This document shows, one piece after another, positions 11,019 to 61,508 of a DNA stretch of 64,000 nt. Every line of letters begins with the position of its first letter. The first letter of the stretch is position 1. The notes under the pieces are model-generated. The model was given only the letters and a program-made list of their open reading frames with translations. It was not told the DNA's origin and did no database searches. Position numbers and translations under genes: made by a program. This DNA is from Macrostomum lignano. Lineage: Eukaryota. Where the stretch lies: positions 186,001-250,000 of the forward strand of contig NIVC01000041.1 of assembly GCA_002269645.1 (NCBI GenBank), read 5' to 3'.

Positions 11019-18578
<7,560 letters not shown>

Positions 18579-39349: not shown

Positions 39350-42300
39350 AACCAAAGGGGAACCTGTCCAAAAACACCCATAGGGCACCCATTCCAACAA
39401 CCGGGAACCTGTCCAAAAACACCTGTAGGGCACCCATTCCAAACGGGAACCTGTCCAAAAACACCTGTAGGGCACCCATTCCAACAACCGGGAACCTGTC
39501 TAAAAACACCTGTAGGGCACCCATTCCAACAATCAGAAACCTGTCTAAAAACACCTGTAGGGCACCCATTCCAACAACCGGGAACCTGTCCAAAAACACC
39601 CGTAGGGCACCTGTCGAAAATCTACTGTAGGGCACCCATTCTACCAACCGGGAACCTGTCCAAAAACACCCGTAGGGCACCTGTCTTAAAATCTACTGTA
39701 AGGCACCCATTCCAACAACCAGAAACCTGTCCAAAAACACCTGTAGGGCACCCATTCCAACCGGGAACCTGTCCAAAAACACCTGTAGGGCACTCATTCC
39801 AACAACCAGGAACCTGTCCAAAAACACCTGTAGGGCACCCATTCTACCAATCGGGAACCCGTCCAAAAACACCCGTAGGGCACCCATTCCAACAACCGGG
39901 AACCTGTCCAAAAACACCTGTAGGGCACTCATTCCAACAACCGGGAACCTGTCCAAAAACACCTGTAGGGCACCCATTCCAACAACCGGGAACCTGTCCA
40001 AAAACACCTGTAGGGCACCCATTCCAACAACCGGGAACCTGTCTAAAAACACCTGTAGGGCACCCATTCCAACAACCGGGAACCTGTCCAAAAACACCTG
40101 TAGGGCACCCATTCCAACAACCGGGAACCTGTCTAAAAACACCTGTAGGGCACCCATTCCAACAACCGGGAACCTGTCCAAAAACACCTGTAGGGCACTC
40201 ATTCCAACAACCGGGAACCTGTCTAAAAACACCTGTAGGGCACCCATTCCAACAACCGGGAACCTGTCCAAAAACACCTGTAGGGCACCCATTCCAACAA
40301 CCGGGAACCTGTCTAAAAACACCTGTAGGGCACCCATTCCAACAACCGGGAACCTGTCCAAAAACACCTGTAGGGCACCCATTCCAACAACCGGGAACCT
40401 GTCTAAAAACACCTGTAGGGCACCCATTCCAACAACCGGGAACCTGTCCAAAAACACCTGTAGGGCACCCACAGTGTGACCACAGCGCATTTTGAAAATA
40501 ATTGAGCAGGACAAATTTTTTTGAGCAGCAACATTAGGCATTGTTTTTTGGAAAAAAATCGCTTTATGTGAAATAATTAACAAACAGAAAAGAAAAAAAC
40601 TACATTTCTAGTCACAAAAACCTTTAAAAAACTTTTTTGAATCCAGTGATATATTTGTTTAACTTAGACAACAACCCTGTGACACTGACACGATTTTTAT
40701 GTATTTCCAAATTCCAGACTTCCCACTTCACTGCGCCAATTTCAAATCATATTCAAATCAAATCATTCAGTCTCAAATCATGTCTTAACTCAAATTAATA
40801 TAGACGTTAAGTTTTTACTGGTATTATCGTCCAGCGATTCACTTCTTGTTTGTTGATTTCGTTAATCCGCCTTTTGGAGCATCTCCTGTGCCAGATATGT
40901 TTTCTCATTTCGTTGATTACCTTTTGTTCAGAAGCTTCGTTCGTCCTCTTGCTTTTTTTCTTTTCCCGCTCATTGGCCTTCCGACGCTGCATGTTTAGCT
41001 TTTTCTGAAGGCGGTTCATTACTTCTTCACGCTCCTTTGCCTTAGCACGTGCTTCAGCGTTTGCACAGGCATCAAAACTGAGGACCAACAGCGAGCGGTC
41101 AGTGCAAAAATCGGATGGCTCTTTTTCCCTTTAGCCAGGACTTGATGGACAAAGGACAGTCCAGTGTATAATCGGCCAGCTGGTTTCGCTGCTTTGTGAC
41201 ATTGTTGGCAATCCATTTGATGACCCGCTCACTGTCGGCGTTTCTATGCGGTAGGCATAGAAATTCCTCACATGGCAATGCGGCCCAGAACTTCTCCGGT
41301 TCTTTGACTCTAGCGTTCAAAGCATTCAACGCAACTTAATGACCTCCAGTCACAGGTCGTCTAGACGAGCGGGTTCAATTACAGTCGGCATAGCCTTAGC
41401 AATCAGGATGACCGTCTCTTCCAAATTCAATTGGTGATCGAGCAGTTGATGTGGGTCAACAAAGCGCAAGCTCGTAGAAGTTTGCTTTCCAACGGCAGGT
41501 AGGCAAAGAAGCGACTGGTGAGCTCAACATAGAAGTCTCGCACTGCCTTAAAAAGCCCACTCGATCTATTTTGGGCAGGCGGCCAATAGTGGTCCTGATG
41601 TTGGCTCCTCAGCTCAGCGTTGACTAGCTGGTTAGAGTGATCCTTTGCAGCAGTGAAGAGATTGGAGAGTGATGTTGCCGCCTCCACCACGTCAGGACGA
41701 ACAAATCTGAGCAGCATGTCGCTACAAACCTGGTCAAGAGCGGCTGATAGCAGGTTCAACGTTGAACCTGCGTTGCGTAGCTTCACGTTGAACCAACTTC
41801 TCAAAGTTTTTGAGCAGTTAGTGACATTTATTAGTGTATTTCAAAAATAGTTGTGCAATTGAGCAGAAAAATAAAAATAGTGCAAAATACTAAAATAGTG
41901 CAGGTGTGGTCACCATGGGCACCCATTCCAACCGGGAACCTGTCCAAAAACACCTGTAGGGCACCCATTCCAACAACCGGGAACCTGTCCAAAACACCTG
42001 TAGGGCACCCATTCCAACAACCAGAAACCTGTCTAAAAACACCTGTAGGGCACCCATTCCAACAACCGGGAACCTGTCCAAAAACACCCGTAGGGCACCT
42101 GTCGAAAATCTACTGTAGGGCACCCATTCTACCAACCGGGAACCTGTCCAAAAACACCCGTAGGGCACCTGTCTTAAAATCTACTGTAAGGCACCCATTC
42201 CAACAACCAGAAACCTGTCCAAAAACACCTGTAGGGCACCCATTCCAACCGGGAACCTGTCCAAAAACACCTGTAGGGCACTCATTCCAACAACCAGGAA

Positions 42301-43900
42301 CCTGTCCAAAAACACCTGTAGGGCACCCATTCTACCAATCGGGAACCCGTCCAAAAACACCCGTAGGGCACCCATTCCAACAACCGGGAACCTGTCCAAA
42401 AACACCTGTAGGGCACTCATTCCAACAACCGGGAACCTGTCCAAAAACACCTGTAGGGCACCCATTCCAACAACCGGGAACCTGTCCAAAAACACCTGTA
42501 GGGCACCCATTCCAACAACCGGGAACCTGTCTAAAAACACCTGTAGGGCACCCATTCCAACAACCGGGAACCTGTCCAAAAACACCTGTAGGGCACCCAT
42601 TCCAACCGGGAACCTGTCCAAAAACACCTGTAGGGCACCCATTCCAACAACCGGGAACCTGTCCAAAACACCTGTAGGGCACCCATTCCAACAACCGGGA
42701 ACCTGTCCAAAAACACCTGTAGGGCACCCATTCTACCAATCGGGAACCCGTCCAAAAACACCCGTAGGGCACCCATTCCAACCGGGAACCTGTCTAAAAA
42801 CACCCGTAGGGCATCCATTCCAACAACCGGGAACCTGTCCAAAAACACCTGTAGGGCACCCATTCCAACAACCGGGAACCTGTCCAAAAACACCTGTAGG
42901 GCACCCATTCCAACAACCGGGAACCTGTCCAAAAACACCTGTAGGGCACCCATTCCAACCGGGAACCCGTCCAAAAACCACCCGTAGGGCATCCATTCCA
43001 ACAACCGGGAACCTGTCCAAAAACATCCGTAGGGCACCCATTCCAACAACCGGGAACCTGTCCAAAAACACCTGTAGGGCACCCATTCCAAACGGGAACC
43101 TGTCCAAAAACACCCGTAGGGCACCCATTCCAACAACCGGGAACCTGTCCAAAAACACCTGTAGGGCACCCATTCCAACCGGGAACCTGTCCAAAAACAC
43201 CTGTAGGGCACCCATTCCAACAACCGGGAACCTGTCCAAAAACACCCGTAGGGCACCTGTCGAAAATCTACTGTAGGGCACCCATTCTACCAACCGGGAA
43301 CCTGTCCAAAAACACCCGTAGGGCACCTGTCTTAAAATCTACTGTAAGGCACCCATTCCAACAACCAGAAACCTGTCCAAAAACACCTGTAGGGCACCCA
43401 TTCCAAACGGGAACCTGTCCAAAAACACCCGTAGGGCACCCATTCCAACAACCGGGAACCTGTCCAAAAACACCTGTAGGGCACCCATTCCAAACGGGAA
43501 CCTGTCCAAAAACACCCGTAGGGCACCCATTCCAACAACCGGGAACCTGCCCAAAAACACCTGTAGGGCACCCATTCCAACAACCGGGAACCTGTCCAAA
43601 AACACCTGTAGGGCACCCATTCCAACCGGGAACCTGTCTAAAAACACCTGTAGGGCACCCATTCCAAACGGGAACCTGTCCAAAAACACCCGTAGGGCAC
43701 CCATTCCAACAACCGGGAACCTGTCCAAAAACACCTGTAGGGCACCCATTCCAACAACCAGGAACCTGTCCAAAAACACCTGTAGGGCACCCATTCCAAC
43801 AACCAGGAACCTGTCCAAAAACACCTGTAGGGCACCCATTCCAACAACCGGGAACCTGTCCAAAAACACCCGTAGGGCACTCATTCCAACAACCGGGAAC
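39350..43900. repeat. 45-bp minisatellite (GTAGGGCACCCATTCCAACAACCGGGAACCTGTCCAAAAACACCT)n, interrupted by a hAT element, with ~1.0-1.2-kb higher-order units
   Basis: Tandem array. A diagnostic variant block (CGTAGGGCACCTGTCGAAAATCTACTG...) recurs at 39601, 42089 and 43247. Confidence 0.96.
40472..41917 (-). mobile_element. Internally deleted, non-autonomous hAT-superfamily DNA transposon with decayed transposase fragments
   Basis: 8-bp TSD GGCACCCA at 40464-40471 and 41918-41925. Imperfect 13-bp TIRs: CAGTGTGACCACA vs reverse complement of the right end, CATGGTGACCACA. The minus-strand fragment LCLPHRNADSERVIKWIANNVTKQRNQL resembles the hAT C-terminal dimerisation motif (LPHSNA..ER.FS). Confidence 0.78.
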
Positions 43901-44579: not shown

Positions 44580-45125
44580 AGTGAACAGACAGACAGACAG
44601 ACAGACATAAGAAAGTTTACGGAGACAGGTAGAAAGTGGACAGCTAGACAGATAGACAGTAGACGAGACAGGTAAGACCATGGACGGAAATAAGTAGATA
44701 GTGCAGACAGATGGTGGAAAGAGTCATGCAGACAGACAGGTACACAGTGGACAGAGTCAGGCAGAAAGACAGGCAGATACACAGTGGACAGAGTCAGACA
44801 GACAGACAGACAGACACTAAGACAGACAGACAGACAGACAGGTACACAGTGGACAGAGTCAGACAGACAGACAGACAGACACTAAGACAGACAGACAGAC
44901 AGACAGACAGGTACACAGTGGACAGAGTCAGACAGACAGACAGACAGACACTAAGACAGACAGACAGACAGACAGACAGGTACACAGTGGACAGAGTCAG
45001 ACAGACAGACAGACAGACACTAAGACAGACAGACAGACAGACAGACAGGTACACAGTGGACAGAGTCAGACAGACAGACAGAGACAGACAGACACAAACA
45101 GGTACACAGTGGACAGAGTCAGGTA
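44580..45125. repeat. Compound (GACA)n microsatellite with ~55-60-bp higher-order unit (GGTACACAGTGGACAGAGTCA spacer)
   Basis: Directly visible. Confidence 0.92.
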
Positions 45126-45595: not shown

Positions 45596-47489
45596 TTAAT
45601 CAACGTCGCAGTTGAGCAGCTCGTCTTCCTCTGCGTCGCCGATTTCGCCAACGCCGCCAACGCCAGCCGCGGGTGCCTTCGGACTCGGAACGGTCGCCGA
45701 CTCAACAGGTGGCGATGAAGATTCAGCCATCGCGGCAGTTGCCTCATTGGCTTTCCCAGCCTCCGGATTATCATCGATAGTGATTATCGATCGATCTTTA
45801 TCAGCTGGCTGTTCAGCCTCCTCTTCGATCAGTATTTCTTCATCTTCATTATCTTCATCAGAGCTGACCAGATTGACTACGACAGGCGACCCGGGCTCCT
45901 CGTAGTCCGTCAAGTCTTCTTCATCTTCATCGTCGAATTCTTCTTCATCATCATCATCGTCATCTTCTTCATCATCTTCGTCGTAGTCAGCTTCCTCATC
46001 CTCGGAGCAGATCTCGTCCGGGTGCGCCTCGGCGCCCGGGAACACGTATTTATTCGGCGGGAATCTGGCAAAGGCGCCATCCGGCAGGTAGGCCGACAAA
46101 TTGCAGTCGTCCTCGTGCGGCGTGGCCGAGGCGTCCGATTCAGCGGCTTCTGTTACTGTCGCTACCGCTGCCGACGAGGATGACGGCTCCGAGGAAGACG
46201 AAGGGCCGGGATGTTCAACTTGCCCGGCTGTCGTCGAGCCCGACGTAGAAGCCGAAGCAGCATCGACGGCGGGTTTTTCGGCATCTTTTGCTGCTTTATC
46301 AGACGACTGCTCAGCGGCGGCAGCGTACGCTAGTCGACGCCTCTCTAACAGTTCTTCACCGCGAATTTCTGACAATTGACCGTCGGCCTCGTCGGCGACG
46401 CCTTCCCAGCCGAGCCGGCGGCACAACTCCGCCACAATCCGGTCGCAGTCGCCTAGCAGGCAAACGTCGAAATTGTGCTGATGCAGCGGCTCGCGATTGA
46501 TTAGAATCTGCGGCACTCGGCTTGGCAAACTGCTCGGAATAAGGCTGACTGGTTGTACTTTTAGCGATGACCCGATCACGATCAGCAGATCGGCTTGGCT
46601 CTCATCTTGGCTAATGCAATCGTAGAATTCTACTGGCAGAGATTCGCCAAAGAACACAATATCAGGCTTTAATACGGCAGGATTTGTTGGCGCTGATTCT
46701 GCCGCTGCAGCTGCTGACGAAGTTGACGGACTAGTAGTAGCAGCGGATTCTGCATCATCCTTAGACTTATCAGCTTTATCGCTACTTGAGCACTTGGGAC
46801 ACACTGGTATGCGCTCGTTCATGATATCATCTTTAATGACATCGGAGTCAACCTTGTGCTTGCACCGCATACAGGAAGCTGTGGCAAACGAGCCGTGACA
46901 GTTCAGCACGCGTTGTATGCCGGCCGACCGTTCCAGTGTGTCGATATTCTGCGAATAGTTGCGCAACAGCCGGCCGCGCTCCTCCAAGGCGCGGATAAAT
47001 CGATGCGACGGGCTGGGCTTAAACAGGCCCGGATAAATCTCTTTGGCGAACTTGAAAAACGGCCGCTGATCCTGTCTAAAGTAGCTGATGTCAAACATTG
47101 AATGCGGATCTGGCAGCTCCGGATACTGGGTGGCCAGCCGAGCGTAGATGCCGTCGCGCGACCGGAAATCCGGGATGCCGCAGGAGACGGACACCCCGGC
47201 GCCCGTGAGCACCAGCACGCGCTGACAGGTGTTCAGAAGGACAACAACATCGTCGAGGGTTGATACGTTTTCTAGACGCTTGCGTCTAGTCGGCTCAGTA
47301 ACTAGACGAAGCAGCAGCTGCCAGAGAGCTTCTTCGGGCGCCTGGAAGCCGGACATGTCCGAGCCAATCAGCGAGGTGAGCAGGTCGCGTGGATTCAAGC
47401 CGCGATCGCGCAGGTGCTGAACATATTCAACGTCGCTTCGAGGCATCGCCGGGACCCGGTGGCTGACCCCGACAATCTGACAGTCGTCG

Positions 47490-47521
<32 letters not shown>

Positions 47522-50500
47522 AACCGTTTCGACTTCATTGTCGCCTGCAACTGCCGCCGCCGCCTCCTCGTCGTCGCCTTCGCTGATGACAACCACCGAA
47601 GTCTGCGAGGAGAGTTGGATGGAGCTCTGGGGTTTCTGGCTTAAAGCGATGCTTTAGGAGTGCATTTGCACCCTGGATTAGAGGCCTGTAAGAGTGACTG
47701 GGCCCTGGATTAGAGGCCTGTGATACTGACTGGGCCTGGATTAAAGGCCTTTGATACTGACTGGGCCCTGGAGGCCTGTAAGAGTGACTGGGCCCTGGAT
47801 TAGAGGCCTATAAGAGTGACTGGGCCCTGGATTAGAGGCCTGTGATACTGACTGGGCCCTGGATTAGAGGCCTGTGATAGTGACTGGGCCTGGATTAGAG
47901 GCCTGTGATAGTGACTGGGCCTGGATTAGAGGCCTGTGATAGTGACTGGGCCTGGATTAGAGGCCTGTGATACTGATTGGGCCCTGGATTAGAGGCCTGG
48001 ATTACTGACTGGGCCCTAGATTAGAGGCCTGTGATAGTGACTGGGCCCTGGATTAGAAGCCTGTGATAGTGACTGGGCCTGGATTAGAGGTCTGTGATAC
48101 TTACTGGGCCCTGGATTAGAGGCCTGTGATAGTGACTGGGCCTGGATTAGAGGTCTGTGATACTTACTGGGCCCTGGATTAGAGGCCTGTGATACCTACT
48201 GGGCCCTGGATTAGAGGCCTGTGATAGTGACTGGGCCCTGGATTAGTGGCCTGTGATAGTGACTGGATCTGGGAATATATAGTTTTAGTTTGAACAAAAG
48301 AAGGTTGGTAGAGAAGCGAGCATTTTTTGCTAATTCCTACAATAACACAAAGTCCAAAGTTTTGTCAGGTTACCTCAGACTGGTTTCCAGGCAGTGAAAT
48401 CTTGCTAGGTGACTCCATATTAGTAGAGTTGGCATCTGCTGCCTCTGTTGCTTCATCATTTGCTAATCTTGTATTGGTGACATCATTTTGACCTTCCTTG
48501 TCATTGACTGCCTCTACTGATTCTGACACTGGATGCTCAGCATTGTTGCCATTGTCTTTGTTGTCCCCATTAGTCAGTCTTGGACGCTTGCCTATTTTGT
48601 AATAAAGAAAAGTGCTGTTTAGTTCAAGGTATTAAAGTCACATAAGTAAATAAATAAAGCATCAAAATTAAAACATGTTTATTGTCATTAAATTGTACCA
48701 ACAAACCGAAAACTTTTAATAAAAATTAAAATAAAAACTATAGATATGATTTTCTATCTGATAATAAAAAATATATTGTATCAATAAAACAAGCACTCAT
48801 TGAATTTTCCATATTTGTCACCAAAACATAATTTTGCCATTGAACATCTGTCACAAATATGCAGTGATAGATAGAATTCCAATAGTCTGATACTCCAATA
48901 CTGTTAGCAATACCTTTTGGGCATAGGGAATATTAGAAACTAATAATTATAAATGAAATATTTGCATACTCTTATAAAAAGTAATAACAAATACTTTAGT
49001 TTTAGGTCAAAAAGTATTTTAAAAAAACATTTATTGAATTTATAAAAAATAATTTAATAACTATCATTATAATAATGATTCTATTTTGTATCAATTTTTT
49101 TAGATCAATTATCATGCTGCACATTGCACAATAATGGCATTGTTAATCACTGATTACCACTTGATTATACAATTTCTATAATAGTATAAATATATTATAC
49201 TAGTACTTAACTAATAACAAAGAATTTAGTGAACAATGTATAAATAAACAGCAAAACTAAAAAAGTTTTACTTTTTTGGCAGCTTGCATTATTGCAACCA
49301 AGGTCTAAACCATACTAGATATTCCTTTTTCTCATGCTATGCTAGAAACTGTCTATAATAATGGCTGATTAAATACATCTAAGCTAAGGGATGAAATATG
49401 AAAATGCATTATTTGTAAACTAATAGGCTGTTATACTACTAAAAATGATAATACTAATATTAATATTAGCCAGGACAAAAAAATTGCCTATAATAATTGG
49501 AAAATTAATTTTTAAATATTAGTGCAATTAGGCCCTAATTAATTTTTTTTCTTTTTTAGTTCGTTAAAGGTTTCAAATTAAATTTTTCTTTGCCTTAAAA
49601 ATTAAGAAAAGTTAAAAAATCCTTTAATGATATATTTATATTTGTTAAATATTGCCTTCTACAAATTATTGGCATTTAATAAAGTTATCAAAATTAAGTA
49701 TTAAGGTAAAAATTGAATAGATGATATTTAAATTAAGATATTGACTAACAACTAATAAAATTATAAAATTTCTATTCAGGTATTTATAAAACTATATAGA
49801 AAAACCTATAAAAATGCTTTTAAAATTCAAATATCAAAAACTAGCAAAATTTAATTTGCAGGTTCCCCAATAGATATTCTGCTGACAGATATTTTTTCCT
49901 TCAAAAAGATAATTCAAACAAAAATGAATTCATGTTTTGGGATATATTCTTTACTCTGACACTATATTTAGCTTTAAAAATTTGTAAGCAGATTTTTTCT
50001 GTCCCAAAGGAAAAAACATTGGCATGAATGCAAAGTGTGTCAAAAGATAAATTCATTGGCACCCCTTACAAACACATTTTGGAAACAAATATCTCAGGAA
50101 ATACAAAAGGCAATCATGTGTCTAGGATGTCATTGCAAAGCTGAGACATGCGTCAAGAATTGATAAAAGTTTCAGAGCAAATGATTGAAGCATTGAGATG
50201 CAGCAATAAATCAAAGTTTTGGTTGATCTTTGCCCAATGTTTTTTTCTTTAGGACAGAAAATTTCTGCTTACAAATTTTTAAAGCTGAATATGGCATCAG
50301 AGTAAAGAATGTACTAATGTTCCACCATAGCCATAGCTACAGCTACAGGATCCTATGGCAAATATGGTAAAATAGGTGCCTATTGCAGCTACAGATACGC
50401 CTATGGTAGCTAGCTGCTCTTACAGCTACGACTACAGAATATGGTAGTTGTTGTCAAACTCCGTAGATTTCCATAGCCATAGTTATTAATGTTAAAAAAT

Positions 50501-51488
50501 TGAAAAAAAACATTAGAAACAGGTAGAGTAAAACAAAGATACTTTTAGTAAACTGTATTATCAACTTAGAAACTTTTAAAATATACTTAAAAAAGTACAC
50601 TAAAACACTAGCAAACTCTAATTTTTATTAATGTGAAAAAATTCAGCATTAGTACTTTCAGTAATGATTAAGTATTGTTGCTCTAAAAAGAGGAAATATA
50701 ATCTTACAAAGGCAATCCAGTGTTTCTTTTATTTTTTAACTTAATTTGCAGTTGATTAAGCACTAGGTTATCTTCTTGATTCAAAATATTTTGTTTTCTA
50801 GACTTTTTGTTAAAACTATGGCTATGGCTATGGGAACTATGGGAATATGATATTATTGGGGTCCCTGATAATATTGGTAATACGGAATATGGAGAATTGG
50901 AATAAGCCATAGTTTTGCTTATAGCTACGGCTATAATATATAAACCCTCTTTACAACAGAACACTACCTGAAACATGAATTCATTTTTTATTAGAATTAT
51001 CTGTTTGAAGGAAAAATATCTATTTGGAGAATATCTGTCGAGGAACTGGCACATAAAATTTAAGCCCGGTAAAATATTTGTAGAAAAAAATGCAACTTTT
51101 TGTTCCAAAATTTCCATGCAAAGATTTAATCCTAGGGCTAGGTGCCAAACATTGCTAAAATTATTTATTACTCAAACTACAAAGGATGCAAATGCAAATG
51201 ATTAATTTATCATTAATTTATCCTTAATTATTATCCAAATATCAATTGAGCACATTATATTGATCTTTATCTTTTATAATATATAATCTTAACAAGGCTA
51301 AAACATAGACACAGTCTATACTAAATGTTTAATATAGCTTAAGAATGCAAATAAATAAAAAAATTCTTACTTTCAGTAGATGGTAACACATCTTCAGCAG
51401 GTCTTTTTGGTATTTCAACTTCAATGCCTTCTTTGACTTTTGCCTTAGTAGTTTGGTTTTTATCTGGTTCACTATCAACTGATTGCAT
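45596..51488 (-). CDS. SIRT1: NAD-dependent deacetylase sirtuin-1, ~780 aa; 3 coding exons
   Basis: Exons 51488-51371 (MQSVDSEP...STE), 48591-48374 (KRPRL NLS-like) and 47602-45596, with consistent phases. Motifs: GAGVSVSCGIPDFRSRDGIYARL, QNIDTLE, HGSFATASC..C, CPKC, KPDIVFFGESLP, GSSLKVQP, and the SIRT1-type C-terminal regulatory segment FPPNKYVFPGAE. The two short upstream exons are less certain than exon 3. Confidence 0.9.
47671..48268. repeat. 31-32-bp minisatellite (GGGCCCTGGATTAGAGGCCTGTGATAGTGACT)n in SIRT1 intron 2
   Basis: Directly visible tandem array. Confidence 0.94.
49946..50310. repeat. Imperfect ~77-bp inverted repeat (arms 49946-50022 and 50234-50310), foldback/MITE-like, in SIRT1 intron 1
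   Basis: ATTCTTTACTCTGACACTATATTTAGCTTTAAAAATTTGTAAGCAGA... matches the reverse complement of ...TCTGCTTACAAATTTTTAAAGCTGAATATGGCATCAGAGTAAAGAAT with scattered mismatches. No clear TSD. Confidence 0.7.
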
Positions 51489-53061
51489 CTTTGAAAAATC
51501 TATCAATTTAATTTAAACACAGATTTATAAAACCAAAACAAAAGCCTATTTTAAATTGGTTTAGACTAGAGATAGGGGATAGGCCTAGAATGGAACTTAA
51601 CTTTAGTTTAGTACAGGCCTAGCTAAAAGAAAGGATTAGGCCTATTCTTGACTGAATATAGGCCTAGATGTTGAGACAGAATTAAGTTTGGCTTTTTTTG
51701 AACGCAAACTTTAGGACTAAATGAAATTTAGAATAATAGTAATGCTATCAATATTACGTTGCAGAATTCGATGTATAACTTAGTTAAATTATTTAACTTA
51801 TAAGGTTAAGGTTAGTTAAACTAGGTCTAAGACAATTTACATGTCTACAATAATTTTTATGGGCTAACTGACCGTGTCAAATAAAATGCACAATAATAGA
51901 ATGAATAAGTTGTCTCAATACAAACGACAGTCGACAATAGCCACAAGCAATTAAAAGAACACTTATTAATTAATGGCGCGGATGCGTGCGCGTTAAGCGT
52001 GTTTTATAAATAACTTTAAAGAGTTCGTTATTTAAAATGTTCAAATACATTAAACAAAAATATCTATCTATCATTGTTATATATGCAGTAAACTGGTAAA
52101 AAAATTAGTAAAAAGGTAATAAAATATAACTTTATATTGCGTCTAAATAAAATTAAGAAGCATATTTCTTCTTCTTTTTCGTGTATTTGTAATTTTGAGA
52201 GACTATTTTTCCTAGAACAAGTACTACATCATGTTGTTCTATCTCACTCGTTTCTCATTCACAGAATCCGTTTACTTTTATTTTAAATAAGTAGATGCAC
52301 CCTTCGATTATTGCTTGTAATTTTAAATTCACTGCTGTGCTTTTATCGTGTCATACTTAGATATTCCTATTGAACGATCTATTATTACTTTATATTACTT
52401 CATTGAGACAAGTCCAATGCAATGTCCTCTGCTTAAGGGTTAAAAGGTTTAAATGATTTGAATGAATGATAGTATTATTATTTATAGGCAATGTTTTTTG
52501 TTGCTTTTATTAGATCTAAGTAAATATTAGTTATCGATTTTGAGCTTGCTACTAATGAAATAAGACGTTTCCACTTATGATTTTCCACAGCTAGATTTCA
52601 TACTAACTGATTTGACTGGCTGCTCAGACCCTTATTTGTTTGAATTTATTTGCTTATTCTATTGTAGTTTGATAATGCTATTAACGTTAACTGATATCTC
52701 TAACTTTTCCATTTAGAGGCACTAAGTAAAAAACTTATAATATAAGAAGAATTTAAGTATATTTATAATAGCTCCATTTTTACTGATCAGAAGATTAGTA
52801 TTTACTGGTAATACTGTACCCAATAAACATCTAGCAAAGCAATCCTGTGCGCTATTGTACACTTTTGCTTTGAAATTGCATTAATTACAATGTAGAAAAA
52901 AGATTTTTATAATTTATGCCATACACATTAAAACGTAAAGGCCCATCTAATAGTTGTATAATACAGTAAATTCTGTTGTACAATTTAAATTGTTGCTATT
53001 TGTTTTTTGACTAAATTTCTAAAAACTTGATATTGATAATATTTTTTCAGCTCATTCTGAA

Positions 53062-53981
53062 ATGGAAGATTTGTATGCTGTTTTAGGAGTGGTTTCTTCA
53101 TCGACAGTAAGCCCTACTAAATTGTATTAAATAATTTATCACTTGTGTGTTAGCAACTTTTCATTTTTTTCAGACAGAACAAATCATAGCCGAGTACAGG
53201 GCTAAAGCCCTCCAACTTCATCCAGACAAAACTGACAGTGCCACCAAGTGTGAGTATACATCTGAATTTATTCCTTATGGATATTAATTCATTAAGTTTA
53301 TATACTATACCGATTGCTTCTCGAATTCAAATATTAGCCGAGCAGTTCAAGTTATTGTCTGTGGCGAAAAATGTGCTCACGGATCCACAGGAGCGCAAGC
53401 TCTACGATCAATGGTACAATTCCGGTAAAATTATGGGTGTAACCTTTGACCAATGGAAGCATTTAAAGATGCACACCAGTTTGCATTGGGCTACCACTGT
53501 GGATCGGACACCCATGGTTGATTCACCTGAGGCTGCTCACACTGATTCTGGCGGTCAGCAATCTGATAATGGTGAGTCATGCAGTTGTGAGCTTTTTTTT
53601 CAAGGAGGCAGCGTCGTCTGCCTTTTAGTCTTTCATAGCGCCTGGTGTCCATGGACTCTGATGTGGGAGTTCCCGAGCAGATGTGGGGTGATAGTCACTC
53701 TGACCTGGGAGTTCCCGAGCAGATGTGGGGTGATAGTCACTCTGACCTAGGAGTTCCCGAGCAGATGTGGGGTGGTAGTCACTCTGACCTGGGAGTTCCC
53801 GAGCAGACGTGGGGTGACAGAAACGAAAATGATGTTAATGTTCTTCCCCTTCAACTCACCCAATACCCCCTTGCTAGTGCACACTGTGGACGATGTGGCG
53901 GCCTACTGGCGCAGCACGCAGTTTAAGGACGCGGCCCCGGCGGGCTCGTTGTTAAGCAAGTTTCGGAACTACGAAATCTGA
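53062..53981 (+). CDS. DNAJC12: DnaJ homolog subfamily C member 12 (JDP1); 4 exons
   Basis: Exons 53062-53106, 53174-53249, 53338-53571, 53878-53981. J-domain: MEDLYAVLG...EQIIAEYRAKALQLHPDK...AKNVLTDPQERKLYDQW. Also TFDQW..LKMHTSLHW and the family-diagnostic C-terminus LLSKFRNYEI. Confidence 0.9.
53655..53820. repeat. 42-bp tandem repeat (~4 copies) in DNAJC12 intron 3
   Basis: CTCTGACCTGGGAGTTCCCGAGCAGATGTGGGGTGATAGTCA units. Confidence 0.9.
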
Positions 53982-54944
53982 CGGCAAATTTTCGGGATGA
54001 TTAAATCAAATAAACTGAGCATAATACTTTTTAAGTGTTTAATAATAACCGATCATCTTTTGATCCTGACATCTTTTCGTCTAGCAATAGATTTCAAGAA
54101 TAATACTAAAACTCGTATTTCTACCTACTGCAGCTTTGGTGTGAGTAGTATTTACTAGATTTTGATTGCATAATTAATCGATTATATTTGTATCATTACA
54201 TTCGATTGTTTTGAGCATGCTTTATTTCGCATCTTCTGCTTCCTGACATCGAATTCCAGAATGGGAGTCTCACTGTTTTCACTTGATATTAAAATTTTCA
54301 GCGACTTTTTCAAAGCACATTTATACAATATACCCGCTGCTCGATATACTCCTAAGCCATCAAAATTAGCTCTTATGTTTTAACCCAAAAAACGGTTCTT
54401 GTGTGCGTTTTATTTTTTTACGCACAAAAAATGTGCAAGCTTTGCTACTCGTGAGTAGTATTAAACCAACACTTATTCAATAGCATAAATTAAGAATTTA
54501 AGATTAGGAATAGCAGTACTAGGGAATGTATTAAAACCAGTAAGTTAAACAAAGAAAACATTCATTAAACAGCCATGGCTTAACCTGAATAAATGGTCAT
54601 TAAAAGAGCTGATTTGTGGCAAATCTTGGCCTATAAGCATGATGTGAGAGAGAAATGGGGGGAACAGACTGCATTCACAATTGGTATGGATGTGGTGAGA
54701 CCAAGGACAACTGAAAAGTGCTCAAGTAACATTAGAGATTTGAAATGCATTGGCAAGGTGGGTATTTTCCGTTGTGTTTTGTGCAAAAAACTTGATTTTG
54801 AGCCATCAATAAGTAAAATTGTGACAACATTGACTCGGCTTCAATACTATTTTACAGTCTTTATGGAATTATCCAATTGCTTGAATTTGTTTTGTCTATG
54901 GTGGTGAGCAGTTCTGCTGATACAGTCAGTTGGATTCCCCTGGA

Positions 54945-55985
54945 TGGATTCCCCTGGTCACAGACGCTGGATTCTCCAAGGTCATAGACACTGCATGGAT
55001 TCCCTTGGTCACAGACGCTGGATTCTCCAAGGTCATAGACACTGCATGGATTCCCCTGGTCACAGACCCTGGATTCTCCAAGGTCATAGACACTGCATAG
55101 ATTCCCCTGGTCACAGACGCTGGATTCTCCAAGGTCATAAACACTGCATGGATTCCCCTGGTCACAGACGCTGGATTCTCCAAGGTCATAGAAACTGCAT
55201 GGTTTCCCCTGGTCACAGACCCTGGATTTTCCAAGGTCATAGACACTGCATGGATTCCCCTGGTCACAGACGCTGGATTCCCCAAGGTCATAGACACTGC
55301 ATAGATTCCCTGGTCACAGACGCTGGATTCTCCAAGGTCATAGACACTGCATGGATTCCCCTGGTCACAGACGCTGGATTCTCCAAGGTCATAGACACTG
55401 CATGGATTCCCCTGGTCACAGACGCTGGATTCTCCAAGGTCATAGACACTGCATGGATTCCCCTGGTCACAGACCCTGGATTCTCCAAGGTCATAGACAC
55501 TGCATAGATTCCCCTGGTCACAGACGCTGGATTCTCCAAGGTCATAAACACTGCATGGATTCCCCTGGTCACAGACGCTGGATTCTCCAAGGTCATAGAA
55601 ACTGCATGGTTTCCCCTGGTCACAGACCCTGGATTTTCCAAGGTCATAGACACTGCATGGATTCCCCTGGTCACAGACGCTGGATTCCCCAAGGTCATAG
55701 ACACTGCATAGATTCCCTGGTCACAGACGCTGGATTCTCCAAGGTCATAGACACTGCATGGATTCCCCTGGTCACAGACGCTGGATTCTCCAAGGTCATA
55801 GACACTGCATGGATTCCCCTGGTCACAGACGCTGGATTCTCCAAGGTCATAGACACTGCATGGATTCCCCTGGTCACAGACGCTGGATTCTCCAAGGTCA
55901 TAGACACTGCATGGATTCCCCTGGTCACAGACGCTGGATTCTCCAAGGTCATAGACAATGCATAGATTCCCCTGGTCATGGACGC
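54945..55985. repeat. 51-bp minisatellite (GGATTCCCCTGGTCACAGACGCTGGATTCTCCAAGGTCATAGACACTGCAT)n, copy 1
   Basis: Tandem array with a ~408-bp (8-unit) block duplication. Same family as 59228-59815. Confidence 0.95.
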
Positions 55986-56205
55986 TCAATTCTCCAATGT
56001 GATAGAAGCTGGATTATTCAGGGTCATAGAAGCTGGAAATAACAATGTCTCTAATGATACCACATTCCCAAGCGACTCACTCATTGCTTTTCCTGAAGAT
56101 TGCGCACCCGTCAACACATGGCCGCAGCCGGGCTTCCATGGTTCTGGCGCGTGATTTCGGCGAGAAAATTCCATCGTAGCTTTTCGCCTCCAGAGTGGGT
56201 AGGAA
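55985..56205 (-). pseudogene. Diverged partial duplicate of CCR4 exon 2 with its splice donor and intron-2 start
   Basis: Reads PTLEAKSYDGIFSPKSRARTMEARLRPCVDGCAIFRKSN/GA|GTGAGT versus the gene's PTLEAKGYDGIFSPKSRARTMEARLRPRVDGCAIFWKNN/GA|GTGAGT (59864-60018). The acceptor and first ~10 codons are absent. Confidence 0.85.
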
Positions 56206-56352: not shown

Positions 56353-59300
56353 TTAGGAAGTACTCGATGCCGCTGAATCCTTTGTTGTTGCTGTGGTGGT
56401 CAGAGCTCGCTGTCGCGTGAGCTGCAGCCGAACCATGAGAGGGATGTGATCAGACGGCACGTACGCGTTTGGACAGCCGAGCACCGCTTCTGAGCGGAAC
56501 CAGTCAGCCAGGCCGTCCAGGCAGTCAAGCACTCGGAAATGCTGCCTGGCCGCGAATATGTAGTCTATGACGCCTTTGAAGTCATGTCTGCAATGACAAT
56601 GGAAAAGTATGAATCTCGGGCAAAAGTAACCTTTCATTAGAACCAGGAGCCTGTGTGCACTCTCGTGCACTTTAAGCGACATTGTCACACAACCGGCGAG
56701 AGGCATTACTGCCCATTCCACCGACTTATCTGAGCAGGCACACAAGCGTATACGTACGTACGCAGTCATACGCACAGGCACACACTCACAAAGGAGTGTA
56801 CAGCAGCCCTCACTTTATTTATCGTTAGGCATGTACACTTTACTGTGCCTTGGGGTTGGCCCTCTTTATAATGCTAAGTTTTGATGCTAAAATCGATCAT
56901 TTTACTTCAAGTATTTGATTGTTGAAAAGTAGAAATAACAGCTATTAGAAATCCTGTTCGCTCTCACGTGTAGTTTGTGAATGCGGTGTCCACTCCGCTG
57001 TAGCAGGACTGCAGGCCCAGCTGATGGAAAAACCGTTTGTCCTTCCCGTCTGGAGCAGCAACAGAGGAAGCTTCAGAATTTGTTGCTTCCGTCGATCCCG
57101 GGGCGGCAGGGGTGGCGGCGGTGGCAGCAGCAACGGCCGCGTCCTGAAGGCCATCTAGCGAGGGATCTTCGCCCAGCCGACGAAAGTCCGGGTGACTGCG
57201 CGGCACGGAGCCCAAGGTGATGAACTCGATGACACCTGGGGTTCGGGTGTGGGGTTTCGATTGGGAAATTTCTATGGAGAGAAAAGTCCGGATTAACTGT
57301 TGCAAAATACACGGGCGCGATTGGTGTACAGATTAATTTCTGTTCGATGCCCAACTGCATCAACTGGGATTACATCTGTGTGAGCACAGTGTACAACAGC
57401 TAGTACTCAGTAAATTATTGTCATCCCGTTATTTAACACTAATATAAGCCGAATACAGAAAATCGTTTGGATAGAGCTTTTAAAAATAAGCAAAATAACA
57501 CGACAAAATGTTTTTCACTACGGAGATTATAAACTACCCTCAAAAGTACCCAGAAAGCCTTTTACTGATCCACACAGATTCGCATAATAAACAAATTTTC
57601 GATGCGAAGGATAACAAGCTCCTTCACTCAGTCTGTAGCTTATTTGTTTTATTTAATTGGATAGTTTTCTTGTTACGAAAATAAGTGCTAAAAATGGAAA
57701 TAATCTGTTTATGGAACGCTGCTTGAAAGGAGCACCTGGTCTTTAAAGATTGTAAATAAACTGGTCTCGACTAGAGATGAGCGTCTTGGCGCAAGTTTTT
57801 CGACAAAATAACTTGAAAGCGTGTGCAGATTGAAAGAGCCGGCCGTCACCGACTTAGGCAGGTTAAGCAGATTTGGCTGCGGTTAGCATACTTAGCCACC
57901 CGGTAGAACGAGTGGACCCTGTCGTGATAGGATACCAGCTCAGAACCGCGGTAAAACACAGGATGAGAGCGGTCCCAGAATCTCAGAACAGTTACAAGCT
58001 GTAGCCCTTGGCTTCTGATTTTTACTCCCTTATCTGATGTTCGTGAAAAGCTTATAGCTGAGCCAGGATCTACTTGACGACCAAGATTTTGATAGCAAAG
58101 AACCACTGTGTAAATGTTTAAAAGGCTGACTTTTTTTATAAAAGTAAACTACAAGCTACATTTTTAAACAGATTTTAAAACAAAGACTACTTTTTCAACC
58201 TCTGGAGCTTAAAAACTTCAAAAATTGTAGGACTTAAAAAGTTTTCCCATACTGAAACTAGCATATAATTTTTTGTTTGTTCTAACAATATTAGTCGATT
58301 ACACCTGCCCTAATGGCCAGATGTGCAACCGACAGCTCAGCCGCAGCTATTGCGCGGCGCATCTGAAGGCTGCGTACGGCTGTTCAGTCCAAGGACTGGG
58401 GGGTCGCCACACGCACCCTCAATTACCCCAGCTAATGCTGGCACCCATTCTACAGCTGGGTGAGCTGAAGCAATGCAGAGTTAAGTGTCTTGCTCAAGGA
58501 GACAAATTGTTCCAGTGGGATCAGGAATCGAACCTCGACCTTCAAGTCGTGAGTCCGACGCTCTCACCACAAGCCTCAAGCCTAAGCCAAGCGACGCTCC
58601 AAACACCACCTAACCACAAGCAAGCTCTCACGTATTTTCCAAGAAACAATGCACCAAATTCTTCTACTTTAAGTAGGCCGTGCGCATATGAATGTCGTCT
58701 TACCTGACTGCGGCAGCGAGTTGAAATCGCCGCAGAGCAGCAACGGCAGGCAGTTTTTGTGTCGTCCAATAATGGCAGCCAGAGCCCCGGCCAGCAGCAT
58801 AGTCTGAATCAGCTTCACGTCCGGGTGCTGCGGGTCCCAGTGCACGTGCGAATTGCAGACCAGCACCAGCCGGCTGCTCGTTGAATTGTCTGATGATTTC
58901 GAAGCCCCGACAGTCGGCATCAGCACCGCAGCCAGGGCGATGTTGTCGCGCGGCGAGACTCGACTGAAGATCTCGGAGGAGGCCGCTGTATCCGCTGAAG
59001 GCTTTGGACTAGTCCAGCACTGCTCAAGGTACTGCTGGTTGAGCTCGATCACTTGCTTTTCCACTAGACTGAATCTGAATGAGGTGGGGGATGTTTTGCT
59101 GGGTCATTGGAAACTAATAGGACGTATTTATGGTCTTAGTGTCCGACAGATCTTGTATTGTAGATATCTGATCATTTTACTGTAAAAGTTCATTAAGGCT
59201 GAAGTTTCACACAGAAGTCATAAACACTGGATTCCCCTGGTCACAGACGATGAATTCATGAATTCTCCAAGGTCATAGACACTGCATGGATTCCCCTGGT

Positions 59301-61508
59301 CACAGACGATGAATTCTCCAAGGTCATAGACACTGCATGGTTTCCCCTGGTCACAGACCCTGGATTCTCCAAGGTCATAGACACTGCATGGTTTCCCCTG
59401 GTCACAGACCCTGGATTCTCCAAGGTCATAGACACTGCATGGTTTCCCCTGGTCACAGACCCTGGATTCTCCAAGGTCATAGACACTGCATGGATTCCCC
59501 TGGTCACAGACGATGAATTCTCCAAGGTCATAGACACTGCATGGTTTCCCCTGGTCACAGACCCTGGATTCTCCAAGGTCATAGACACTGCATGGTTTCC
59601 CCTGGTCACAGACCCTGGATTCTCCAAGGTCATAGACACTGCATGGATTCCCCTGGTCACAGACGATGAATTCTCCAAGGTCATAGACACTGCATGGATT
59701 CCCCTGGTCACAGACGATGAATTCTCCAAGGTCATAGACACTGCATGGATTCCCCTGGTCACAGACGCTGGATTCTCCAAGGTCATGGACGCCGGATTCT
59801 CCAAGGCCATAGAAGCTGGAAATAACAATGTCTCTAATATTACCACATTCCCAAGCGACTCACTCGTTGTTTTTCCAGAAGATTGCGCAGCCGTCAACAC
59901 GCGGCCGCAGCCGAGCTTCCATGGTTCTAGCGCGCGATTTTGGCGAGAAAATTCCATCGTAGCCTTTCGCCTCCAGAGTGGGTTGGAAGAACGAAAAGAA
60001 CTGCTCAGTTTCCACTTCCTATTTGGCAGAGAGAGATGTTAAATTCAGGGGTTATTTAAAAACAAATACCACGCAATATTTTGCTACGTTGGGTTGAATT
60101 TATAATAATAAATATTGAACAAAGGCCCTGGAAAAGACTGTCCAAAGAAGACGGAAAAGGGACTGTCGGAAGAAGATTTGGGAGGGGCTTTCGAGAGAAG
60201 ACCCGGGAGGGGCTGTCGGGAGAAGACCCGAGAGGGACTGTCGGGAGAAGACCCGGGAGGGACTGTCCGGAGAAGACCCGGGAGGGACTGTCGGGAGATG
60301 ACCCGGGAGGGACTGTCGGGAGATGACCCGAGAGGGACTGTCGGGAGAAGACCCGGGGGGGGGCTGTCGGGAGAAGACCCGGGAGGGGCTGTCGGGAGAA
60401 GACCCGGGAGGGACTGTCGGGAGAAGACCCGGGGGGGGGGGGCTGTCGGGAGAAGACCCGGGAGGGTCTGTCGGGAGAAGACCCGGGAGAGACTATCGGG
60501 AGAAGGCCCGGGAGGGACTGTCTGGAGAAGGCCCGGGAGGGACTGTCGGGAGAAGACCCGAGAGGGACTGTTGGGAGAAGACCAGGGAGGGGCTGTCGGG
60601 AGAAGACCCGGGAGGGACTGTCGGGAGAAGACCCGGGGGGGGCTGTCGGGAGAAGACCCGGGAGGGGCTGTCGGGAGAAGACCCGGGACGGACTGTCGGG
60701 AGAAGACCCGGGGGGGCTGTCGGGAGAAGACCCGGGAGGGTCTGTCGGGAGAAGACCCGGGAGAGACTATCGGGAGAAGGCCCGGGAGGGACTGTCTGGA
60801 GAAGGCCCGGGAGGGACTGTCGGGAGAAGACCCGGGAGGGGCTGTCGGGAGAAGACCCGGGAGGGTCTGTCGGGAGAAGACCCGGGAGAGACTATCGGGA
60901 GAAGGCCCGGGAGGGACTGTCTGGAGAAGGCCCGGGAGGGACTGTCGGGAGAAGACCCGGGAGGGGCTGTCGGCAGAAGACCCGGGAGGGACTGTCGGGA
61001 GAAGACCCGAGAGGGACTGTTGGGAGAAGACCCGGGAGGGGCTATCGGGAGAAGACCCGAGAGGGACTGTCGAGAGAAGACCCGGGAGGGGCTGTCGGGA
61101 GAAGACCCGGGAGGGACTGTCGGGAGAAGGCCCGGGAGGGGCTATCGGGAGAAGACCCGAGAGGGACTGTCGAGAGAAGACCCGGGAGGGGCTGTCGGGA
61201 GAAGACCCGGGAGGGACTGTCGGGAGAAGACCCGGGAGGGACTGTTGGGGATGACCTGGGAGGGGCTGTCGGAACGTCAGTGAATCACTCACTTGCAAGC
61301 ACAGCACCGAAGGCAGATGACAGCAGATGACCTCCATCAGGCCTTGCCGTCTGTATGACCAGGCCAGGGCCCAGTCGGGACAGTACCAGTAGGTCTTGGC
61401 AGAGGCATACTGGTCGCTGAGTATGTTGTAGCTCATCAGCGTGAATACGGTCTCATCAGTGTGGCTCGGCTGGGCCAGATTCCGCCAGCGCTGACGTGGC
61501 GGCTTCAT
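56353..61508 (-). CDS. CCR4/CNOT6-type EEP-family deadenylase, ~414 aa from the first visible ATG; 5 exons; no LRR seen
   Basis: Exons 61508-61293, 60018-59864, 59074-58704, 57235-56968, 56587-56353, with consistent phases. Motifs: FTLMSYNIL, YCPDWALAWSYRR, LQEVETEQ, FSPKSRARTM, VDGCAIF, HVHWDP..PDVKLIQT, CGDFNSLP.SGVIEF, AFTNYTHDFKGVIDYIF, PSDH. The start may be incomplete. Confidence 0.85.
56631..56812 (-). mobile_element. 5'-truncated copy of the SINE at 36132-36456, in CCR4 intron 4
   Basis: Reverse complement aligns with ~36272-36454 (shared translation ...MTAYV...[15 protein letters not shown]...). The tRNA head is missing. Confidence 0.8.
58290..58600 (-). mobile_element. tRNA-derived SINE with CORE-like domain in CCR4 intron 3
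   Basis: Minus strand: tRNA-like head with B-box GGTTCGATTCC, followed by TCCTTGAGCAAGACACTTAACTCTGCATTGCTTCAGCTCACCCAGCTGTAGAATGGG. This resembles the CORE/MIR consensus CCTTGGGCAAGTTACTTAACCTCT...CATCTGTAAAATGGG. No TSD found. Confidence 0.7.
59228..59815. repeat. 51-bp minisatellite, copy 2, in CCR4 intron 2
   Basis: Same unit as 54945-55985, with a private GATGAATTC variant. Confidence 0.95.
60125..61272. repeat. 25-bp G-rich minisatellite (GGGACTGTCGGGAGAAGACCCGGGA)n filling CCR4 intron 1
   Basis: The array starts ~20 bp after the exon-1 donor (in minus orientation). Confidence 0.95.

Follow-up and report, generated by a model that had tools for sequence, protein, structure and literature searches.

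A head-to-head SIRT1–DNAJC12 gene pair in the flatworm Macrostomum lignano and its relation to conserved ancestral microsyntenic pairs

Introduction

Why should the gene of the deacetylase SIRT1 lie head-to-head with that of the co-chaperone DNAJC12 in a flatworm, in an arrangement also seen in vertebrates? DNAJC12 is known from human genetics as a co-chaperone for HSC70 and the aromatic amino-acid hydroxylases. The two genes are adjacent at human 10q21.3, where we take their strand orientation to be divergent, and the same two orthologues are adjacent and divergent in zebrafish.

The window analyzed here is a 64-kb stretch of the Macrostomum lignano genome, in which SIRT1 on the minus strand and DNAJC12 on the plus strand are immediate neighbours transcribed away from each other (5'-5'). 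The question that this locus raises has three parts: whether the two genes are true orthologues of their human namesakes, whether their adjacency was inherited, and what could have kept it.

The two genes of the locus

The SIRT1 gene (minus strand) was modelled with three exons, from an ATG at 51488 to a stop codon at 45596, and its product has 780 aa. The predicted exon 1 (51371–51488), which is without homology support, was placed by its start codon at 51488, a GTAAGA donor and the closure of the reading frame. Exon 2 (48374–48591) opens with the basic, NLS-like KRPRL and has AG/GT boundaries that preserve the frame; goldfish SIRT1 (P0027) likewise has KRPRL close to its N-terminus, and an octocoral orthologue has KRARL. 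Exon 3 (45596–47602, 56% GC) stays open between its acceptor, cag|ACTTCGG, and the stop codon; it codes for an acidic linker, the N-terminal region that is specific to SIRT1, the entire catalytic Sir2 domain and the C-terminal tail.

The Pfam SIR2 domain (PF02146) was matched over its full profile at 2.9e-59, and both the catalytic His (CHGSF) and the Zn-binding CxxC...CxxC tetrad are present (NCHGSFATASCMRC...CPKC in the translation). Against solved structures, human SIRT1 gave the best score with 404 bits, followed by yeast Sir2 (241), SIRT2 (206) and SIRT3 (196); the protein is thus nearer to SIRT1 than to any of these paralogues. The flanks of the catalytic domain point in the same direction: residues 174–230 align with the N-terminal region of human SIRT1, which is specific to SIRT1, and the C-terminal PPNKYVFPGAE aligns to the motif PPNRYIFHGAE of the human regulatory segment. 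Among the best 120 database proteins, every named match is a SIRT1. Judged by structure-match scores, domain and flanks, the gene is a true SIRT1 orthologue in the class I sirtuin orthogroup.

DNAJC12 (plus strand) has four exons between an ATG at 53062 and a stop codon at 53981. Exon 1 (53062–53106) is followed by exon 2 (53174–53249), which carries helix II of the J domain and the HPD, and by exon 3 (53338–53571), in which the J domain is completed and the conserved S-x-HW motif lies; exon 4 (53878–53981) supplies the C-terminus, LLSKFRNYEI, with the stop codon. The product is short (152 aa, in the family range of about 150–200 aa), with a single N-terminal J domain, its HPD within LHPDK, matched by Pfam DnaJ on exons 2 and 3, and no other domain. 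With A0A1I8H416, its paralogue from the second subgenome of Macrostomum lignano, it shares 97% identity.

The best solved-structure match is the J domain of human DNAJC12, and the human protein aligns with the flatworm one from end to end, including the C-terminal LLxKFRNYEI. Across nine orthologues the residues S88, H90, W91, F147, R148, N149, Y150 and I152 are invariant, the last five making up FRNY-x-I. The gene structure has been kept as well. Macrostomum, Lottia, Capitella and zebrafish have introns 1 and 2 at identical points of the alignment, and a third intron, before S-x-HW, is missing in Macrostomum. By J-domain match, alignment, C-terminal motif and shared introns, this gene is identified as a true orthologue of DNAJC12 (JDP1).

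Both models run in frame to their stop codons with canonical GT-AG introns, and they agree to the base with the start codons at 51488 and 53062 given by the earlier sequence-only reading. Between 45000 and 54500, neither a tRNA nor an Rfam match (E <= 0.1) was found. Taken on the sequence evidence, the locus is the M. lignano copy of an orthologous, divergent SIRT1–DNAJC12 pair. Beside the pair, the window contains minisatellites and, further left, a gene for an axonemal-type dynein heavy chain.

Distribution and age of the pair

The same two genes were found head-to-head and as immediate neighbours in three other phyla: in the limpet Lottia gigantea (Mollusca) with a spacer of 1.3 kb, in the bristle worm Capitella teleta (Annelida) with 3.6 kb, and in Danio rerio (Vertebrata) with 1.9 kb. 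The orientation is 5'-5' in all four genomes, Platyhelminthes included. In humans, DNAJC12, SIRT1 and HERC4 fall into one linkage-disequilibrium (LD) block (PMC6901563). The conservation is limited to the pair itself; the remaining neighbours vary by species, with cox5b adjoining dnajc12 in zebrafish, and none of the other neighbours is shared between vertebrates and the flatworm.

The pair is also missing from many animals. In the leech Helobdella, the crustacean Daphnia, the beetle Aromia, the sponge Oscarella and the octocoral Dendronephthya, the upstream neighbour of SIRT1 is another gene (eIF1A in Aromia, a GPCR in Daphnia), and no DNAJC12 was seen within 10 kb of SIRT1 in the spider Uloborus, the sea cucumber Apostichopus or Nematostella. 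DNAJC12 itself has orthologues in many members of a wider set of taxa that spans Branchiostoma, Saccoglossus, sea urchins, Amphiura, Priapulus, Lingula, bryozoans, oysters, Schmidtea, Schistosoma, Fasciola, M. hystrix, M. cliftonense, cnidarians, placozoans and sponges. The sequence-only reading had named absence from most intermediate lineages as a sign of convergence or chance. By count, such absence is in part what was found, as 8 of the 11 sampled non-flatworm genomes are without the pair within 10 kb; by phylogeny the conclusion drawn from it does not hold, since the same two orthologues in the same orientation in three spiralian phyla and in vertebrates argue for repeated loss rather than convergence.

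That flatworms and the remaining lineages acquired the adjacency independently, as the many genomes without the pair might seem to suggest, is very improbable. As a genome holds more than 10^4 genes, the chance of finding any one gene as the divergent neighbour of another is about 1e-4 per genome; the recurrence of the same orthologues, immediately adjacent and in one orientation, in four phyla argues against coincidence. Nor could tandem duplication yield such a pattern, because SIRT1 and DNAJC12 are not paralogues. These genome comparisons give good support for a pair that goes back at least to the protostome–deuterostome ancestor and was lost repeatedly, and the suggestion that it may be an ancient bilaterian microsyntenic unit is supported by its recurrence in Mollusca, Annelida and Vertebrata. 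In the congener Macrostomum hystrix no ancestral linkage groups are detectable (PMC11410931), so the survival of the pair is not due to a generally conservative genome.

The intergenic spacer

The spacer (51489–53061) measures 1573 bp from ATG to ATG with 28% GC, in line with the AT-rich interval of about 1.6 kb that had been read from the sequence, and it sits within a roughly 5-kb AT-rich block at 48.4–53.3 kb. It contains no ORF reaching 50 aa, no ORF with a domain match, no tRNA and no Rfam match. Two features stand out within it. A palindrome cluster (51580–51666) lies 92–178 bp upstream of the SIRT1 ATG, with TAGGCCTA at 51580, 51637 and 51659 and CAGGCCTA at 51614. These three exact copies of TAGGCCTA are the sole ones in the window, where 0.74 would be expected, and the cluster is a candidate promoter-proximal element. 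The other is a CpG-rich patch (51975–52001), GGCGCGGATGCGTGCGCGTTAAGCGTG, the only such patch in the spacer, which includes the one-mismatch NRF1-like core CGGATGCG; since the window has no excess of such one-mismatch matches, this core is weak evidence.

Opposite-strand transcription start sites (TSSs) less than 1 kb apart are the usual criterion for a bidirectional promoter. The 1.57 kb in Macrostomum is above that figure, as a distance between start codons and not between TSSs. Possible trans-splice acceptors are located directly upstream of both ATGs: an AG dinucleotide immediately 5' of that of SIRT1 (tttttcaaAG|ATG), and a polypyrimidine tract with an AG at 53041–53050, 11 nt upstream of that of DNAJC12. 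The promoters could thus be nearer to each other than the start codons are, or elsewhere. Spliced-leader (SL) trans-splicing affects about 30% of M. lignano genes (PMC8629364), which again means that the true promoters may lie elsewhere.

The four spacers were compared for common words. No 9-mer is common to those of Macrostomum, Lottia, Capitella and zebrafish. AT-rich words aside, the one shared word is the NRF1-like ACGCATGCG, which Lottia, Capitella and zebrafish have in their spacers and Macrostomum does not. The NRF1-like CGCATGCG occurs as a sole copy per 24-kb locus in Lottia and in zebrafish, inside the spacer each time, and three of its six copies in Capitella are within the spacer; the zebrafish site GCGCATGCGT is 90 bp upstream of dnajc12. 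The exact motif of the other spacers is not present anywhere in the 64 kb of Macrostomum sequence.

A second idea, control of the spacer by heat-shock factor (HSF), was taken from the HSF site at the fly Sir2/DnaJ-H locus. The heat-shock element (HSE; GAAnnTTCnnGAA, up to 1 mismatch) was not found in the Macrostomum, Lottia or Capitella spacers, and the two weak matches in the zebrafish spacer were not above shuffles. The idea was rejected for want of these elements.

Comparison with the fly locus

The arrangement in Drosophila deserves a closer look, as Sirt1 (Sir2) of the fly is likewise head-to-head with a J-domain gene, DnaJ-H, across a very short shared 5' region. With some 40–50 J-protein genes among the about 14,000 genes of the fly, a J-protein neighbour would arise by chance in only about 0.3% of cases, on a rough estimate. 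One could imagine a functional coupling, in which selection favours a J-domain gene divergent to SIRT1 because the deacetylase and an HSP70 co-chaperone would then be controlled together; DNAJC12 would have been retained since the bilaterian ancestor, and in the fly, once that pairing was lost, DnaJ-H would have taken its place beside SIRT1 with a strong HSF site in common. Drosophila Sir2 partly overlaps the oppositely transcribed dnaJ-H (PMC3808700); among the HSF-bound sites of the fly genome the Sir2/DnaJ-H spacer ranks second in strength, and heat induces Sir2 in larvae (PMC3021535). The fly gene is a type I J protein orthologous to DNAJA2, and the fly orthologue of DNAJC12 is Jdp (PMC5597180), which fits a re-created neighbour.

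The same orthology assignment means that the fly arrangement is not homologous to the flatworm pair, and the strong HSF binding of the fly region stands in contrast to a flatworm spacer without heat-shock elements, a lack that extends to Lottia and Capitella. The argument is also post-hoc and built on a single lineage, the genes beside SIRT1 in the beetle and in Daphnia do not encode J proteins, and the induction of dnaJ-H has been ascribed to general stress rather than to the sharing of a locus (PMC3808700). We therefore consider such coupling improbable. If true, it would mean that NAD-dependent deacetylation is tied to the chaperone system through the architecture of the genome.

Why the pair persists

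The reading that we prefer, with a probability of roughly 60%, is that of an inherited pair kept by shared or interleaved promoter elements, of the co-regulated 5'-5' type. That the pair was inherited and not re-created follows from the comparison of genomes above; the part on its persistence is proposed here as a likely course of events. Both promoters would lie within one short spacer, with regulatory elements that are shared or interleaved. A breakpoint in the spacer would then harm at least one of the genes, and the pair would be kept; it would be lost in heavily rearranged lineages, or in those whose promoters came to act independently. A shared bidirectional regulatory region holding the pair together, as the sequence-only reading had suggested, is a plausible candidate mechanism.

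A simpler account is that the ancestral pair persisted passively with no functional coupling at all. A spacer of 1–4 kb is a tiny target for breakpoints, any break in it hits a promoter, and some ancestral neighbours survive by chance. That at least five of the sampled lineages lost the pair with no apparent consequence speaks for this account, as do the missing heat-shock elements and a Macrostomum spacer that has no motif in common with the others. On the other side are the retention of the orientation in every one of four phyla, including a flatworm genus with obliterated macrosynteny, the recurrence of the NRF1-like motif in three of the four spacers, and the co-expression above matched controls of 5'-5' conserved pairs as a class (PMC3514665). 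The human locus adds a further point against passive survival: a SNP in the SIRT1 promoter is reported to be an eQTL of SIRT1 and of DNAJC12 alike (PMC11981957). Passive persistence is a real possibility, about half as probable as the retention by promoter elements proposed above.

Two observations limit how strong the proposed retention could be. The pair is broken in many lineages, which counts against a strong constraint and indicates that any constraint is dispensable. The distance between the human genes is presumably tens of kb, against 1.57 kb in Macrostomum, and would poorly fit a classic bidirectional promoter.

Relation to known conserved gene pairs

A well-described class of gene pairs offers the closest parallel. 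According to Irimia et al. (2012, PMC3514665), 595 conserved ancestral microsyntenic pairs (CAMPs) are known; 5'-5' orientation, short spacers and co-expression are over-represented among them, and lineages have lost them repeatedly. SIRT1 and DNAJC12 are immediate neighbours in Platyhelminthes, Mollusca, Annelida and Vertebrata with the 5'-5' orientation kept, phyla that may differ from the lineage bins of those authors. Like 5'-5' CAMPs such as HSPE1–HSPD1, the pair consists of non-paralogous genes, is divergent across phyla and has short spacers in compact genomes; like CAMPs in general, it has been lost repeatedly in fast-evolving lineages such as flies and the leech. HSPE1–HSPD1 and SIRT1–DNAJC12 also have in common that each includes a chaperone-system gene. 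They differ in that a shared promoter is demonstrated for HSPE1–HSPD1, whereas it is only a candidate for SIRT1–DNAJC12.

The main text of Irimia et al. names neither SIRT1–DNAJC12 nor flatworms (searched as 'Schistosoma'), and a full-text literature search for the synteny of DNAJC12 and SIRT1 returned nothing relevant. The pair would thus join a known class as a new member, or at least as one not discussed before, and it reveals no new kind of system.

Implications

The presence of the pair in Macrostomum, a genus reported to be without ancestral linkage groups, provides a natural test of whether shared regulation protects short divergent spacers, and the 1.6-kb spacer is directly testable since transgenesis exists in M. 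lignano. For the biology of SIRT1, the arrangement implies that the expression of DNAJC12 may shift when the 5' region of SIRT1 is manipulated or carries variants. Such neighbour effects at the SIRT1 5' region are already illustrated by the controversy over Sir2 and DnaJ-H in the fly, and by the double eQTL in humans.

Gene Models and Their Identity

The two genes stand head to head, and the sequence-only reading had their coordinates exactly right, as the frames close with its starts and stops. SIRT1 lies on the minus strand with its ATG at 51488. A SIRT1-like frame of 666 codons is open at 45596-47596 and reaches an acceptor at 47602, so that exon 3 (47602-45596) is one open frame from acceptor to stop. 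Exon 2 (48591-48374) is bounded by canonical GT-AG introns, while exon 1 (51488-51371) is placed solely by its ATG, its donor site and the closure of the frame. The total length of the three exons is divisible by three and gives a protein of 780 aa. The upstream exons are supported by the motif KRPRL, which opens exon 2 and is also found near the N-terminus of goldfish SIRT1; motifs of the K-R-x-R-L type occur in octocoral and beetle SIRT1 as well.

In the product a full Sir2 domain (Pfam 2.9e-59) is present, as are the catalytic histidine of CHGSF and the two zinc-binding CxxC pairs. Among solved structures the best match is human SIRT1 with 404 bits, ahead of yeast Sir2 (241), SIRT2 (206) and SIRT3 (196), and its alignment reaches into the SIRT1-specific N-terminal region. 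The C-terminal PPNKYVFPGAE forms a separate short match to human PPNRYIFHGAE, and every named protein in the best 120 database matches is a SIRT1. Directly C-terminal of the second zinc CxxC pair, where human SIRT1 has few residues, the Macrostomum protein carries a low-complexity insertion of ~35 aa, SSSDKADKSKDDAESAATTSPSTSSAAAAAESAPTNP (46340-46450, residues about 387-420).

DNAJC12, on the plus strand, has four exons (53062-53106, beginning with the start codon, 53174-53249, 53338-53571 and 53878-53981) and a DNAJC12-like product of 152 aa ending in LLSKFRNYEI. Among solved structures it is closest to the human DNAJC12 J domain, and human DNAJC12 aligns with it over the full length. An invariant S-x-HW and FRNY-x-I are common to the proteins of Macrostomum, mollusc, annelid, fish, shark, turtle and human, and introns 1 and 2 have the same positions in Macrostomum, Lottia, Capitella and zebrafish. 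M. lignano is a neopolyploid. UniRef A0A1I8H416 from this species is 97% identical to the DNAJC12 of the window and is probably the other subgenome copy.

Database searches found DNAJC12 orthologues in amphioxus, brittle star, priapulid, brachiopod, bryozoan, molluscs, ticks, spiders, bees, crustaceans, one nematode and the fluke Fasciola. Kickxellomycete fungi (Ramicandelaber, Coemansia; database proteins P0385, P0002) have short J-proteins which end in KFRNYEI or are close to DNAJC12, and to judge from these relatives the family may be older than animals.

The AT-rich divergent interval of ~1.6 kb described in the sequence-only reading was borne out: 1573 bp separate the ATGs (51489-53061), with 28% GC. 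Together with SIRT1 exon 1 and intron 1 and the first DNAJC12 introns, it makes up an AT-rich block of ~5 kb (GC 26-28%) flanked by GC-rich 3' gene bodies (56-59% GC). Searches of the SIRT1-DNAJC12 region for tRNA and Rfam families gave no matches.

Other Features of the Window

SIRT1 intron 1 holds an inverted repeat (49943-50313) whose 80-nt arms are 89% complementary and separated by 211 nt. It resembles a foldback or MITE-type insertion, and its opposite-strand ORFs encode near-identical peptides. Minisatellites crowd the window, many of them yielding long spurious ORFs in several frames. They lie in SIRT1 intron 2 (32 bp x19, 47671-48266), in DNAJC12 intron 3 (42 bp x3.9, 53655-53817) and just 3' of DNAJC12 (51 bp x21, 54940-56006), with others at 2186-3069, 3553-4596, 5929-8586, 39348-43884, 44714-45094 and 59256-61508.

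The very long exons at 23939-36021 (plus strand) belong to a dynein heavy chain gene, recognized by its Pfam matches: DHC_N2, AAA_6, AAA_7, AAA_8, AAA_9, AAA_lid_11 and Dynein_heavy. A 924-codon open frame (15804-18578, minus strand) matches the collagen triple-helix repeat at 1.2e-42; it consists nearly entirely of GQ(M/L)GQQ repeats, has a Q/Y-rich C-terminal part, and is either a collagen-like gene or a low-complexity artefact. At 56353-61508 (minus strand), candidate ORF pieces of a CCR4/nocturnin-like deadenylase resemble by eye the endonuclease/exonuclease/phosphatase family (FTLMSYNILSDQYA, LLLCGDFNSLP, VPSDHIPLMVRL); searched as separate fragments they had no Pfam matches, and a proline/serine-rich repeat lies between them.

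Conservation and Age of the Pair

Eleven other genomes were sampled, amphioxus, hemichordate, priapulid and a second flatworm not being among them. Around the SIRT1 or DNAJC12 orthologue, as much as 10 kb of flank in either direction was examined through the called genes and a DNA search with four DNAJC12 queries. The genes are head to head in Lottia gigantea (a 173-aa DnaJ gene, every exon matched, ending in KFRNYEI, 1.3 kb from SIRT1), in Capitella teleta (148 aa, ending in NFRNYKI, 3.6 kb from SIRT1) and in Danio rerio (sirt1 of 742 aa and dnajc12 of 165 aa, 1.9 kb apart). The human genes we take to be divergent in strand orientation. Other genes occupy the position upstream of SIRT1 in Daphnia pulicaria (a GPCR gene), the beetle Aromia moschata (eIF1A), Dendronephthya gigantea (Tti2), Helobdella robusta (ELP1) and Oscarella lobularis. 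No DNAJC12 was found within 10 kb in Apostichopus japonicus, Uloborus diversus or Nematostella vectensis, the last with a partial SIRT1 model and no upstream gene called.

Since DNAJC12 orthologues are widespread in Bilateria, it is rearrangement rather than gene loss that explains why arthropods and echinoderms lack the pair. The proposal of an ancient bilaterian pair, made from the sequence alone, thus holds: the same non-paralogous genes are immediately adjacent and always divergent in three spiralian phyla and in vertebrates. With adjacency and orientation constant across four phyla, chance or convergence is not a reasonable explanation, and we put the probability of common descent at about 0.9 or higher. 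The pair goes back at least as far as the protostome-deuterostome ancestor, with repeated losses since.

Elements in the Spacer

An NRF1-like palindrome, CGCATGCG, is found in the spacers of Lottia (8935-8942 of its locus) and zebrafish (9911-9918), in each case as the sole copy in a 24-kb locus, and three of its six copies in the Capitella locus fall within the spacer (6778, 7512, 7748). Its presence in three spacers counts for regulatory constraint. The whole 64-kb Macrostomum window has no exact copy; a site with one mismatch lies in the single CpG-rich patch of the spacer (51975-52001). No 9-mer is common to all four spacers.

Macrostomum has a candidate regulatory element of its own. Of the palindromic octamer TAGGCCTA, the whole window has only three exact copies, where 0.74 would be expected. 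All three fall within 87 bp (51580-51666), with a near-copy, CAGGCCTA, at 51614; the cluster lies 92-178 bp upstream of the SIRT1 ATG. This ATG is directly preceded by a pyrimidine tract and AG (tttttcaaAG, 51489-51498), and in DNAJC12 tattttttcAG (53041-53050) is followed by the ATG 11 nt later. Both look like spliced-leader trans-splice acceptors, and as spliced-leader trans-splicing affects about 30% of M. lignano genes (PMC8629364), the real promoters could be elsewhere.

A J-Protein Gene beside Sirt1 in Drosophila

In the fly, Sir2/Sirt1 partly overlaps the oppositely transcribed J-protein gene dnaJ-H (PMC3808700). DnaJ-H is the orthologue of DNAJA2, the fly DNAJC12 orthologue being a separate gene, Jdp (PMC5597180), so the fly arrangement is not homologous to the Macrostomum pair. 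In the whole fly genome, only one site is bound more strongly by HSF than the Sir2/DnaJ-H spacer (PMC3021535); heat-shock control of the SIRT1-DNAJC12 pair was considered and rejected, the tested DNAJC12 spacers having no heat-shock elements. Upstream of SIRT1, beetle and Daphnia have unrelated genes. That SIRT1 has again come to lie beside a J-protein gene may be coincidence, with a rough prior of about 0.3% for an observation made post hoc; it could otherwise point to selection for joint regulation of SIRT1 and a co-chaperone, a reading we consider quite improbable.

Why the Pair Was Kept

We lean slightly towards regulatory constraint as the cause of retention. The literature describes 595 conserved ancestral microsyntenic pairs, a class enriched in 5'-5' orientation, short spacers and co-expression and often lost in single lineages (PMC3514665), and the fit of SIRT1-DNAJC12 to this class speaks for such constraint. 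So does the survival of the pair in Macrostomum, a genus in which all trace of the ancestral linkage groups of metazoans, and of synteny with other flatworms, has reportedly vanished (PMC11410931). In human, where CTNNA3, DNAJC12, SIRT1, HERC4 and MYPN share one LD block (PMC6901563), a SIRT1-promoter SNP has been reported to be an eQTL for SIRT1, DNAJC12 and HERC4 (PMC11981957), which points the same way. Against constraint stand the Macrostomum ATG-to-ATG distance of more than 1 kb, the lack of an exact NRF1-like site in the window and of a 9-mer common to the four spacers, and the possible trans-splice acceptors; the many lineage losses show, at best, a weak or conditional constraint. The pair might instead have persisted passively because its spacer is a small target for breakpoints, an explanation we hold to be less likely than regulatory constraint.

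Our literature search found no paper on SIRT1-DNAJC12 synteny; the pair may already be listed, uncommented, in the supplement to Irimia et al. The phenomenon itself is already known, and SIRT1-DNAJC12 is a new or undiscussed member of the class, here extended to a flatworm. The finding is solid and modestly interesting, and would be no surprise to a comparative genomicist.
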